Below are positions 20,475 through 24,603 of a DNA stretch of 64,000 bases, one piece after another; within the stretch, counting starts at the first letter, position 1, and each line of letters opens with the position of its first letter. Location of the stretch: the NCBI GenBank assembly GCA_964199315.1, contig OZ116702.1, forward strand, positions 10,540,001-10,604,000, read 5' to 3'. The position numbers and the translations under genes were made by a program. The notes below the pieces were generated by a model. It saw only the letters and a list, made by a program, of their open reading frames with translations, was not told the DNA's origin and made no database searches. This DNA comes from Orbicella franksi (lineage: Eukaryota).

Positions 20475-23400
20475 GTAAGTATTTGAGAGATCGTATCGAT
20501 GAGAACTTTGTACTTTGTCGTTTGTTTAAATCTGATACAGTATTTGTACGTGCGCTGTACAAGTGGTCGATGTACAACTCCTCTGTGGCCGCTGTTTCAT
20601 TAGACTCAGTTCTGAACCGATGTTACTCATTCTCTGTTACGCTAAGTTTTATTGACATTCCTTCAAGTTGTAACTGTTCAGTTCTGTTAAGATATTTCCA
20701 AACCGAGCAGTTAAAATCAAAACAATTTCAAGTGAAAATGGTGAAATAATTGAAATAATCTCACGGGTTTCACGGTGAGATTCTCAACACACCTTCGGAA
20801 ACTGTTCATTTATTATAAATGGGCTTAGACAAACCCAGTATAACTGATCAAACCTGAATCAGCTGATTGTGTACCATTCCAGGTTTTAGCGAACGACATT
20901 CGTATCCCTCATGATTATAATAATTATGATGAAGACTAACAATTAAAGTGTTAATTTCATCTTATCTTTGACTTTAGGAATTATGCAAGTTCGAGTACCG
21001 AAGCTGTGAAGGTGTACAATCCATACAGTCAAGAAAATATAGCCATCATTTCCGCTCTCTTGGCATCGGGATTCAGACGAATACCTGACGATCGCCCCGA
21101 TGCTAATCATCACACATTCCTACCATGTCCGCTGGGGACCTTTTCCAACTCTTCTTCTAAGGGAGCTGAGGGATGCATAGAATGTCCTCCAGGTATATAA
21201 TCAGGATCCTTTTTGGTGGCTTTTAGATTTTTCTTCAATGAGGCTGCAAATCAGACATGCGTGCTGGCGTCATGGAATCTGGAGATCATGTCAAAATGCT
21301 TTAGCAGACCAGTTCTTCATTTTCCCATGACGCCATAACACCCATTAAAAGAGGCTAAAACGCGCCTGTAAATATTTATTTCCGTGGCAAAAAGTTCCGT
21401 AATGAGTAAAATTTCATACAGTCTCTGCATCGGCTTGAACGCAGGAAGGAATATGTCCGTTGCAAGATCAGTCAACTAAGTCTCAATTGCAATAGTGCAA
21501 AAATAATTATGTGCTGGAAAATTGTAATTTTCACTGCAATGATTTTCGTAGAGTCTTGATTGTATTCATTTATTTATAAAGGTGGATTTTACTCTGATGA
21601 TGAAGGCCACGTAGCAGAAAGCTGCAAGAAATGTCCAACTGGTTCTTTTGTTCCATTTGATAAGACACCAGGGAAACGACCCCAAGATTGCAAGACATGT
21701 CCGGAAGGTAATAGTAAATGACTATGTCCTCCCAAGTGAGATCATCGACCCTAGTGAACTGAACACTTACTGACTTAAGGATATTCATTCCGTGTCTATC
21801 TTTCGCGCCAAAATTCATGCAAAAGTTTTCTCTCAAAATATTCCAACTTAGGCAACATTACGTGTTGTAATATAATGCACTTCCTTGTCACCCCTCGGAT
21901 ATTACCAAAATTCGTCCAAAGAGTAACAGTAATACTGGTTTTCAATAAGTCCACTAATTTAAAAAATGCACGCGAAGGATTAACGTGAGTTCTTTTTCGA
22001 GAGAAGTACTTCCTGCGCATGATTGTGAAAAACGAATATTCAATATACAATAGACATCAAATCAAATTGCGCAATGAGTGAAATGAGACCTTAAGCGAGG
22101 GTATCTTCTTGGTTAACCTAAGGGTCACAATAGGAACAGGCGTTACGTTTTACAAAATTTATTCAGAAAATCTCATTTCTGGTTCCAATCTTTAATAGGG
22201 ACGGATACTGATTTCTATGCTGGATACCGTGCCTGTCCATGTTTGGACGGATTTTATCGCACCCACATGTTTGAGCAATGTCACAAATGTGGACAAGGTG
22301 GGCTGAAATGCCAGGATGAATATGCTTCATTAAAACCTGGTTATTGGTGGGAATGGCGGAACGAGACGCACAAAGATCGCTACAGAGACTATATAGCAAA
22401 CCTCTTGACATCTTCCCCGGCGTTAGATGCTTCCAGCGTTCAATTCCCATATCAGATACCATTACCTTACATGTGCCAGGTGGAGGAGTCTTGCCTTGGA
22501 GGTCTAGATTCCCCTTGCAAAGAAGGCTATGAAGGTCCGCTCTGTGCTGTTTGCAGTACAGGATATTACAAACACCTACAAGCATGCACACAGTGTCCAT
22601 CAAGGCATTGGGTGGTTGGACAGCTGTCGATAATTGCAGCCATAGTGTTTATAGTTGTTGTTCTCACAGTGTGGACAAGCAACAGAAAGAGAAAGAGGGG
22701 AGGAGGAAGCTCTTTTTTGGACATGTTATTTTCCAAACTTAAGATCGTCATTGGATTTTACCAAGTCACCCACGGTTTGCTCGAAGCGTTCTCGTTCATA
22801 AAGTGGCCGGGTGCCCTGGAACTAATCACGAAGTATTCAGAAATATTACAAATGAATATATTTCAGATAGCACCCATTCACTGCTTATATCGGGGATTAA
22901 GAGTGGATGCCTTTGCAAGCTTGCTGGCGGTAATGGGGTTTAATGTGGCTGTCATTAGCATTTCGGGTTTCAGTTATGGTTTGCGTAAGGTTTTTGTATT
23001 AAGAAGTCGATTGCTTGACGACAAGGCCAAGTCAGACAAAATCTCAAAGGCGAAGGAAAGCATATACAGGAATTTACTTTTTTTCCTCTATGTGACGTAC
23101 CTGAGCACGTGTTCTAAGACCGCCGCCGTTCTACCGCTCGCTTGTCGTAAACTCTGCCGAGACAAAAAAGAAGAGTCTTGTCACAAGTATCTAAAAGCAG
23201 ATTACAGCGTACTATGCGAAGGTCCAGAGTACAACCATTTGCTTGTCGCAGCGTACATTGCTACTGCCTATATCATTGCCCTTCCTGTGGCGACATTCGT
23301 CGCGCTTTGGAGACAAAGACGAGTAATATCAGCGAAGAACGAGGCACAAGAATATACTGATTCTAGCAAGGAGGTGATTACTGGATTGCGGTTTCTTTTT

Positions 23401-24603
23401 GAAAACTACAAAACTCGCACATGGTATTGGGAAGTGGTTGAAACGTCTCGCAAAGTAATTCTGACTTCTGGTCTGATTCTTGTGGGACAAGAGAGCAGGT
23501 CCTACATTGGCTTGGCATGGGTCATCGCCGGGATGTACGGAATGCTTTTCTCGTGGAACGCACCCATACAAGACGTGGTCGAAAACAGACTAATGGCTAC
23601 GTCCCTTGCCGTAACTGTTGTCAACCTGGGTATTGGAGCTGTCAGCAGAATACCTGCAGAGAATATACCAACCTCTGTCAATCCCTATAGAGACGCAGTA
23701 TTGTTCAAGTTATTAGTGTTTGGAGCAAACGCTTTGGTGATTGGTCAACTGGTTGGTAAGATGACACTCTTAACTCAAGTTTTAATCACTTTTGCTGGTA
23801 AAAATGAGTTGATTGGAGTGGGTGGGAAGAAGCGAAGTGTAGTGTAATGGACGAAGTGGAGTGGGTTGAGAAAGATTGGGTGTGGTGAAAAAAGCGAAGT
23901 GAAGTGAAGTGGGGGAGATGGGGTTGTGCAAAGAGTAGTTGGATATTTAGGGGGATGGGTGCAGAGAGTGAAATACAGTGAGGTGGGGTGGACTGGACTG
24001 GAGTTGCATGCTGTGGCTTGTCGTTGAGAAGAGCACAGATAGCAGTTTGTGGCTCCTGCTTTATTTCATTTCACCTTTTTTGGAACTATTTGTGGAGACC
24101 TATTTACAGTAGGTGTAGCACGCCTGGTAGCCCACTCAATAAAACACATTATTTTAGCGTCTCAAACCTACCTTTATTTCATTTACTTTTCAGTTCAGTA
24201 TGCAGTGTTTCTTTACCGCTACCTCAAGGAATGGCTTAAAAATCCACATTGGTCCTGTTCTTGTTGTCTGGGTTTGGTTCTCCCTTTCTTTGACTTACAA
24301 GGGGAAATTGGTGCTATGGTTGAAACGAACATCCTAAACAACCAGCTAGGAACAGGATCAAACATCGAAAGACCCAGCATTCTTTCCTGCGAGGACGACA
24401 GTTGCAATGTTGTTGTCGGGAATAGAAAAGGTGAACAAATTGATAATAGAGAAATAATGGCACCGAACGGCAGTAAGCGATATGTGGAGCTCAACAACAC
24501 AAAATGTCATCAAGGAACACAGACGGAGCCCTTTTTGTTGTCAGTTGCTCTTATTGTGGTACATAAGCCAGCAGATAAAACAGCACACGAGGAATCTCTG
24601 TGA
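953..24603 (+). CDS. Multi-exon LRR ectodomain / Cys-rich (GCC2-GCC3, ephrin-receptor-like) / multi-pass (~9 TM) membrane protein; 5' end lies upstream of the window
   Basis: 29 exons with AG/GT (one GC) boundaries: 953-1024, 1723-1794, 3073-3144, 3559-3630, 4078-4149, 4318-4389, 5349-5420, 5867-5938, 6764-6832, 7258-7329, 8128-8199, 8824-8895, 9512-9580, 10968-11039, 12317-12385, 13156-13227, 13869-13940, 15656-15727, 16098-16166, 17081-17152, 17530-17601, 17951-18049, 18398-18469, 19572-19646, 20403-20474, 20978-21192, 21582-21707, 22199-23755, 24194-24603. They sum to 4126 nt (1 + 1375 codons including TGA) and join in frame without stops. The LRR exons read xLxxNxIxxLPxxxFxxLxxL (e.g. [48 protein letters not shown]). 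Confidence 0.9.
8400..8560. repeat. Compound tetranucleotide microsatellite (TGAC/GATG/GGAC/GATC)
   Basis: Directly visible runs: actgactgactg, gatggatgg, ggacggacgg. Confidence 0.9.
9668..9985. mobile_element. Palindromic non-autonomous element with internal hairpins
   Basis: Inverted arms gatatccgaaataatcaaggtc / gaccttgattatttcggatatc (~9688-9772), plus a perfect 17-bp hairpin gattattcactaatctg-ctat-cagattagtgaataatc at 9936-9973. Confidence 0.65.
10559..10860 (+). mobile_element. Full-length tRNA-derived SINE (cnidarian SINE2 / Nin-type)
   Basis: A-box-like TGGCCTCGTGG, B-box GGTTCGAGCCC, conserved central body and a simple-repeat tail. The direct repeat aacctaatta at 10546-10555 and 10861-10870 is a probable TSD. 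Confidence 0.85.
11842..12260. mobile_element. Palindrome-headed non-autonomous repeat
   Basis: Hairpin ttcaaaaagctgaaattgcac..gtgcaattttagctttttgaa at ~11845-11892, followed by body sequence ending ..catgtatattatt. Confidence 0.5.
14755..15455. mobile_element. Non-autonomous repeat with subterminal inverted motif
   Basis: gcggagctcctg at ~14775 and caggagctccgc at ~15439; the GC-richer interior is distinct from the surrounding intron. Confidence 0.5.
17735..17830. repeat. (GACT)n / (AGTC)n microsatellite
   Basis: ctgactgactgactgact and, downstream, the inverted agtcagtcag. Confidence 0.8.
18520..18790. mobile_element. Non-autonomous interspersed repeat in an LRR-gene intron
   Basis: GC-richer block with motifs (ttcgagattttcccgtaaagaccgaac; attagagcgcgcg) that I recognise from cnidarian palindromic repeat families. 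Confidence 0.4.
20978..21707 (+). CDS. Cys-rich GCC2/GCC3 (ephrin-receptor-like) repeat exons of the LRR-TM gene
   Basis: Exon 20978-21192 (..[22 protein letters not shown]) and exon 21582-21707 ([43 protein letters not shown]) show the CPxG(T/S)F...CxxCP pattern. Confidence 0.85.
22199..23755 (+). CDS. Large exon encoding a further Cys-rich region and the multi-pass TM domain of the LRR-TM gene
   Basis: ORF 22243-23847. Acceptor TTTAATAG at 22198 and donor GTAAG at 23756. Motifs [18 protein letters not shown], [35 protein letters not shown]; about 9 hydrophobic segments. Confidence 0.92.
23840..23995. repeat. Purine-rich GTGGA/GTGAA low-complexity tract in the last intron
   Basis: gaagtgtagtg, gaagtggagtggg, gaagtgaagtgaagtg repeats. 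Confidence 0.7.

Follow-up and report, generated by a model that had tools for sequence, protein, structure and literature searches.

Positions 20978-24603 (+ strand) of the Orbicella franksi contig OZ116702.1 stretch analysed here are, with a probability of roughly 0.7, the 3' portion of a functional gene that encodes a predicted multi-pass surface receptor of this coral, whose membrane part is a nine-helix module of the type found in fungal Flc/Pkd2 proteins, Dictyostelium SadA and the alveolate cysteine repeat modular proteins (CRMPs). The whole stretch, called the window below, comprises 64,000 nucleotides (assembly GCA_964199315.1, positions 10,540,001 to 10,604,000 of the forward strand), and all features are given in window coordinates on the + strand unless stated otherwise. 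An original prediction made from the letters of the window had proposed an uncharacterised receptor or channel class with a leucine-rich repeat (LRR) and GCC2/3 ectodomain on about nine transmembrane (TM) segments. The nine segments and the GCC2/3 repeats were recovered; the novelty of the class was not, since the module very probably falls in a known superfamily with characterised members, namely Pkd2, SadA and the CRMPs.

The stretch corresponds exactly to the final four coding exons of a long predicted gene. Base 20978 directly follows an AG acceptor, the TGA stop lies at 24601-24603, and exons 20978-21192, 21582-21707, 22199-23755 and 24194-24603 splice into a single open frame of 768 codons, all introns between them being GT-AG and of phase 1. 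The last splice junction, IGQLV/VQYAVFLY, gives the same sequence as properly spliced proteins of Oculina patagonica, the species with the closest named homologs (63-70% identity). Exon 20978-21192 (phase 1-1) encodes the post-LRR linker and a first ephrin-receptor-like (GCC2/GCC3) Cys repeat (PF07699, E 4e-4) with 49-62% identity to the Oculina homologs in tblastn, and exon 21582-21707 (phase 1-1) a second ephrin-receptor-like or TNFR-like Cys repeat, with PF07699 and PF00020 matches below threshold and 72-79% identity to Oculina. The large exon, 22199-23755, is free of in-frame stops, shares 67-70% identity with Oculina and holds a third Cys repeat with a helical insert, a DUF7630 Cys knot and the helices from TM1 to the first half of TM9, whose end is encoded by the last exon, 24194-24603, together with a cytosolic tail of 127 residues. 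The same exons and splice sites, those of the second exon included, were found in two other coral assemblies, L003 and L004, the former ending before the last exon so that only the first three are seen in it. For the large exon, the ratio of nonsynonymous to synonymous substitution rates (dN/dS) against orthologs was 0.29 at 90% identity and 0.15 at 79% identity, and these values indicate purifying selection.

Nine TM helices were obtained alike by hydropathy and by an AlphaFold2 (AF2) model of the TM module built on 34 homologs, with a mean predicted local distance difference test (pLDDT) of 82.6 and a predicted template modelling score (pTM) of 0.79. In a model of the whole large-exon product (pLDDT 81, pTM 0.79), the Cys-rich stalk and the helix bundle fold as one unit. 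TM1 (22606-22674, hydropathy maximum 2.73, model helix 2-33) is followed by a cytosolic RKRKR stretch; basic loops are predicted to face the cytosol and Cys-rich loops the exterior, which places the ectodomain outside and the tail inside the cell. TM2 (22714-22788), supported by hydropathy, model and family conservation, contains KIVIGFYQV, the first of two motifs singled out in the original prediction, which starts at residue 295 of the four-exon product; the second lies at residues 511-532. Both are present as claimed, hold family-invariant residues (K, I, Q, W, E and R, of which K, I and Q belong to KIVIGFYQV) and constitute the best-conserved positions in the family. TM3 (22909-22986) and TM4 (23062-23130), both seen by hydropathy and in the model, lead to extracellular loop 2 (23134-23223), which folds in the model as a beta sheet of three strands (182-205) and contains four Cys as well as KADYS, whose D is invariant; C182, D201 and C206 of the loop are invariant or nearly so. 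TM5 (23227-23310; hydropathy, model and conservation) carries an invariant Pro and is followed by a cytosolic amphipathic helix (LRFLFENY) and by a WE-x5-RK signature at the start of TM6 (23380-23454 for both together), where module residues W277, E278 and R284 are invariant and F265, Y270, E281 and K285 near-invariant. TM6 (23428-23487), TM7 (23497-23559) and TM8 (23575-23646) follow, with an invariant P after TM7 and a conserved N in TM8, and TM9 (23683-24219, model helix 362-384) is split by the last intron, 23756-24193.

The module very probably belongs to the PF06011-type pan-eukaryotic superfamily, which includes fungal Flc/Pkd2, Dictyostelium SadA and DDB_G0281931 and the alveolate CRMPs. 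PF06011 is matched by 12 of 34 family members, among them a homolog of the sea cucumber Apostichopus that scores 30.8 bits (E 1.7e-7), above the gathering score of 28.5; this protein matches the window at E 1e-30, has the architecture LRR, PF07699 and PF06011, and was already annotated with PF06011. When the model (residues 1-384) was compared by Foldseek with reviewed proteins, a probability of 1.00 was reached by DDB_G0281931 (Q54T82; TM-score 0.67, E 4e-8), SadA, Flc1-3, YOR365C, Pkd2 and Cryptococcus Flc1, the TM-scores of Flc1-3, Pkd2 and YOR365C being 0.51-0.58; no vertebrate protein rose above noise among these reviewed-protein matches. Foldseek also matched proteins named 'TRP C-terminal domain', at E 1e-8 to 1e-10, and many protist receptors. 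A member from Tribonema aligned to the family profile with an hhalign probability of 99.4%. Together with the PF06011 homolog match, these fold matches bear out the resemblance to the Flc/Pkd2 'TRP-like' region that had been proposed from the letters. Weak Pfam matches to Fz, bacteriorhodopsin and EphA2_TM were judged to be noise.

The best fold matches among reviewed proteins are thus those of Dictyostelium, Q54T82 and SadA (Q8I7T3, TM-score 0.56). Q54T82 likewise joins LRRs to the module, and SadA, an adhesion receptor (PMC2173991), carries EGF repeats on nine TM helices and serves in substrate adhesion and phagocytosis; both, however, are amoebozoan proteins of 10-17% identity that lack the coral-type GCC2/GCC3 stalk. 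Function can be carried over from them by analogy only. The fungal proteins (Flc1-3, Schizosaccharomyces pombe Pkd2, Cryptococcus Flc1) share the TM fold, an N-terminal ectodomain and a cytosolic tail with the coral protein, but their ectodomain is lipid-binding or ML-like instead of LRR/GCC2-3 and identity is 10-13%. Ca2+ permeation on membrane stretch has been described for S. pombe Pkd2 (PMC9727806).

The coral module is likely linked to the CRMPs as well. These proteins trigger regulated exocytosis of rhoptries or mucocysts in Toxoplasma, Plasmodium and Tetrahymena (PMC9670195, PMC9815656), their core consists of EGF/ephrin-receptor-like Cys modules directly followed by nine TM helices (PMC9815656), and for their TM cores a likeness to the Dictyostelium homologs has been predicted (PMC9670195, PMC9815656). 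The coral protein fits this layout with PF07699 repeats and a DUF7630 knot before its nine helices. Inspection of the TgCRMPA and TgCRMPB cores (PMC9815656 S2 Table) revealed a C..C..GY..C..CPS knot before TM1, 'KI' in TM2, WE-x5-RK before TM6 (KKYWYWEMVVFARK in CRMPA and YRWWEGVIGLRK in CRMPB) and P-[IF]-(x)-D after TM7, all of them shared with the coral protein and arranged alike in it; WE-x5-RK is also found in the Tribonema member. Moreover, paralogs from Oculina and Apostichopus have been named 'cysteine repeat modular protein A-like' by the NCBI pipeline. TgCRMPA/B, PfCRMP1-4 and Tetrahymena CRMP1/2 have in common with the coral protein a Cys-rich ectodomain on nine TM helices, with the N-terminus out and the C-terminus in, but they bear Kringle, MAR or lectin modules instead of LRR arrays, and they number one to four genes per genome, with an A/B pair acting in rhoptry or mucocyst exocytosis, as against about 60 LRR-bearing copies in the coral. 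Sequence searches started from the sea-cucumber and Tribonema members led to echinoderms, cnidarians and algae of the brown and yellow-green groups and to no alveolate, which their length window or word filter may exclude.

In the proposed mechanism, the variable LRR/Cys-rich ectodomain would bind a ligand or a surface, whether of a microbe, a symbiont, prey or an adjacent cell, and the rigid, disulfide-bonded stalk, together with the Cys-rich extracellular loop 2, may relay this binding to the helix bundle. The output would then arise at the cytosolic face, which is strongly conserved and made up of the TM2 lysine (K), the amphipathic helix LRFLFENY and the WE-x5-RK signature of TM6; it is expected there because the residues conserved between alveolates and animals cluster in the bundle and along its cytosolic rim. 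By analogy with Pkd2, SadA and the CRMPs, the likeliest output would be a local Ca2+ signal leading to adhesion, uptake or secretion, although Ca2+-linked transduction by the coral receptor can be put forward only tentatively and its odds are below even.

Several observations weigh against the reading of the stretch as the end of a functional receptor gene of this type. The module of the window itself scores 17.5 bits against PF06011 (E 0.002), below the Pfam gathering score. What ties the module to the CRMPs is a set of motifs, the architecture and a name assigned automatically; as no CRMP was aligned to the module by a tool, the link is graded likely rather than shown. Neither a pore nor a selectivity filter nor an oligomer could be defined, and a homodimer prediction of the TM module, counted here on the unfavourable side, returned a score of 0.01 that is evidence neither way. 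Among the relatives, ion conduction has been shown for one distant member, Pkd2, while SadA and the CRMPs figure in the literature as receptors for adhesion or signalling and not as channels. As for RNA, the contigs of two metatranscriptome runs extend over introns just as they do over exons and contain no joints, and no reads were obtained from two poly-A runs in a 12% sample.

The strongest competing explanation, itself rather unlikely, is that of an adhesion or scaffold receptor without ion flux, whose nine-helix module would serve solely for pairing, trafficking and anchoring, a role proposed for the CRMPA/B heterodimer and for SadA, while signalling proceeds through partners and the tail. 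It draws on SadA, for which no conductance has been reported, on the CRMPs, which act together with MIC15 and TSP1 as one complex and whose TM modules are predicted to heterodimerise, and on the conserved islands SCSCC and TQT retained in the coral tail. The strongest conservation from alveolates to animals, however, lies in the bundle and cytosolic rim and not in the tail, and Pkd2 alone passes Ca2+ in vesicles.

A second explanation, distinctly less probable, is a silent or decaying paralog, intact in sequence and not expressed. It would account for the lack of evidence for spliced RNA, for the intron-spanning metatranscriptome contigs and for the empty poly-A libraries, and several paralogs in the genome do contain stops. 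Across 19400-24900, the metatranscriptome contigs include introns as deeply as exons, at a low depth in both cases, and 23526-24254, for instance, is spanned without a break. The libraries concerned probably contain DNA of genomic origin or RNA that was not spliced, so that the presence of a stretch in them is no proof of expression. Against silence or decay stand the four open exons with canonical splice sites, the retention of all family-invariant residues, the exon structure conserved in two other corals and the dN/dS of 0.15-0.29; in addition, the raw runs were sampled at 12%, and the tissue or even the organism may be missing from them.

The remaining explanations concern the nature of the membrane part and find little room. 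A transporter, suggested by the designation of Flc1-3 in yeast as 'flavin carrier protein', agrees with the fold match to these proteins but is very improbable: large, variable, swap-in ectodomains (LRR, TIG, sushi, SRCR, beta-helix, ANF receptor) are typical of receptors, and no solved transporter fold was matched by Foldseek or VIA-align. Searches of PDB returned no hit by sequence profile and no match at E <= 0.001 by Foldseek, and the best VIA-align match (Z 6.1) was an unspecific one to a designed helical protein, with no G-protein-coupled receptor (GPCR) among the matches. In the absence of a PDB relative by any of the three routes, the module is taken to be neither a GPCR nor a canonical TRP/polycystin channel.

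A divergent GPCR, LGR-like or adhesion-GPCR-like with two extra helices, could be argued from the PANTHER label 'GPCR-like' of CRMPa and CRMP1, from the name LGR4 of one Holothuria member and from the large adhesive ectodomain. Yet the helices number nine; Pfam finds no 7tm, GAIN/GPS, TIR or kinase family in the TM region or tail; a regex search of the spliced protein located no NPxxY or CWxP, its sole 'DRY' lying in the ectodomain and not in a TM helix; and the best GPCR structures reach TM-scores of 0.10-0.19 at probabilities of 0.44 or less. With no confident alignment of the TM region to any seven-TM GPCR family in Pfam or Foldseek, the earlier statements that the module is no class-A GPCR and that it lacks DRY/NPxxY, TIR and kinase stand, and the GPCR alternative is scarcely credible. 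Hardly better placed is a true tetrameric cation channel of TRP or polycystin type: PF06011 is named 'TRP' and the Ca2+-permeable Pkd2 of S. pombe is called a polycystin homologue, but none of the many solved TRP and PKD2 structures was matched by Foldseek, VIA-align or sequence profile, and nine helices without an S5-pore loop-S6 unit are seen, so that the term 'channel-like' used in the original prediction proved to be nominal. A Toll-like receptor was rejected, the tail having no Pfam family (no TIR) and the protein nine TM helices instead of one.

The receptor family thus delimited is broad. An exhaustive phmmer search gave 1955 cluster representatives at E <= 1e-3, with named members in stony corals, anemones, sea stars, brittle stars, sea cucumbers and the sponge Oscarella. 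Beyond animals, AFDB and ESM Atlas clusters place the module in haptophytes, ciliates, green algae and other eukaryotes, on ectodomains that vary between ephrin-receptor-like, TIG, laminin-EGF, sushi and beta-helix types, and the sequence searches from the sea-cucumber and Tribonema members bring in ectodomains of SRCR, MAM and ANF-receptor type and extend the range to algae of the yellow-green and brown groups; the module was found with GCC2/GCC3 ectodomains in haptophytes, ciliates, green and brown algae, in keeping with the suggested occurrence of its motifs in protists and algae. The ectodomain also differs between members of the family, SRCR, MAM and sushi domains being additionally present in one from Nematostella. 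Haptophyte relatives were seen to carry TIR_2 or START domains, and one cluster with ephrin-receptor-like and PF06011 domains is recorded mostly from Nucleocytoviricota (giant viruses).

Within the O. franksi genome, at least 95 six-frame matches were counted, including about 60 full-length TM exons without stops. Many of the paralogs lie in clusters on contigs C4, C5, C7, C8 and C10, and several paralogs carry stops. On C10, between about 10.3 and 13.1 Mb, eight paralogs make up a sub-family whose TM exon is split (query residues 2-245 and 240-384), with an extra intron in the module, and these split-exon paralogs have open frames of about 700-860 residues. The literature was searched for the animal branch of the family and no paper was found; module and receptor logic are already known from fungi, amoebae and alveolates, and in the searched literature it is the LRR-bearing, expanded animal branch only that is unstudied.

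In animals, the family has been hidden under names drawn from its LRRs, as had been foreseen for automated pipelines: 'Leucine-rich repeat-containing protein 15' (LRRC15), 'LGR4', 'Carboxypeptidase N subunit 2' and 'IGFBP acid labile subunit'. Such names mislead with regard to a receptor family shared by corals, anemones, echinoderms and a sponge. LGR, Toll-like and SLIT-type receptors do share with the coral protein an extracellular LRR array with N-glycosylation sites, but the latter has no seven-TM GPCR core, TIR or single-pass TM, and its membrane part is unrelated to theirs. With its membrane part recognised as the CRMP/SadA/Flc-Pkd2 module, the family becomes a further candidate among coral receptors for surface recognition, one that is neither a Toll-like receptor (TLR) nor an NLR nor a GPCR. 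Since no structure has been solved for the fold, any member would also give a new membrane-protein structure.

A wider idea, which must be regarded as a long shot, is that animals kept a 'touch-to-response' receptor of CRMP/SadA type and that the LRR cassettes of the roughly 60 coral genes form a diversified recognition repertoire, by which contact with microbes, symbionts or prey would be turned into local Ca2+ signals and regulated secretion or uptake. If this were true, the coral receptors would trigger cnidocyst or mucus discharge or phagocytosis by the same logic as the CRMPs trigger rhoptry and mucocyst discharge.

With respect to the ectodomain, the DUF7630-like Cys knot (22474-22602; C..C..GY..C..CPS) stands immediately before TM1, as does the corresponding pattern in TgCRMPA/B; it matches PF24633 at E 1.1e-5 with 26 bits against a cut-off of 27 and has invariant Cys, Gly and Pro columns in the family alignment. 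The GCC2/3 repeats claimed earlier are the PF07699 repeats of the first two exons. The LRR part of that claim stood in substance and not in place, the LRRs being real and encoded by upstream exons of 72 nucleotides, with none within 20978-24603. In the same manner, of the N-glycosylation sequons listed at the time, NET is found in the large exon, where it forms the ectodomain sequons of the four exons together with NSS in exon 1, and NMT, NQT, NHS and NGT are located in the upstream LRR exons. The triplets NGS and NNT of the tail lie on the cytosolic side.

The tail encoded by the last exon is 44-46% identical to Oculina tails. Right after TM9, a Cys cluster, SCSCC (24253-24267), is followed by the hydrophobic LGLVLPFF; both are conserved in Oculina and may constitute a palmitoylated, membrane-hugging segment. 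The tail is poorly conserved elsewhere except for a TQT island at 24508-24534 (HQGTQTE, with KATQTE in one Oculina paralog), TQT being kept in 16 of the 19 full-length homolog tails, about 91 residues past the NPHW motif. This island presumably resembles the anchor bound by the dynein light chain LC8.

The upstream part of the same gene model, at 1723-19647, consists of about 22-25 single-LRR exons of 72 nucleotides and phase 1-1, which were located by tblastn with Oculina N-termini and by a search for AG/GT-bounded 72-nucleotide segments. An LRR regex applied to whole open frames gave no match because each repeat occupies its own exon, and it was the splice-bounded search that found the repeats. 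Neither a signal-peptide exon nor the first exon of the gene was found within the window, the array starting before it, at least as far as -8272, and ending at about 19650. Over contig positions 10531729-10540000 and window positions 1-19650, at least 35 of the 72-nucleotide LRR cassettes were counted on the + strand and none on the - strand. Cassettes of the 'ITxISxxTF' type, which in homologs stand third from the array end, recur at -3500, -1506, -293, 3559, 7258, 16098 and 17530, a pattern that hints either at segmental duplication of the 3' part of the array or at alternative cassettes.

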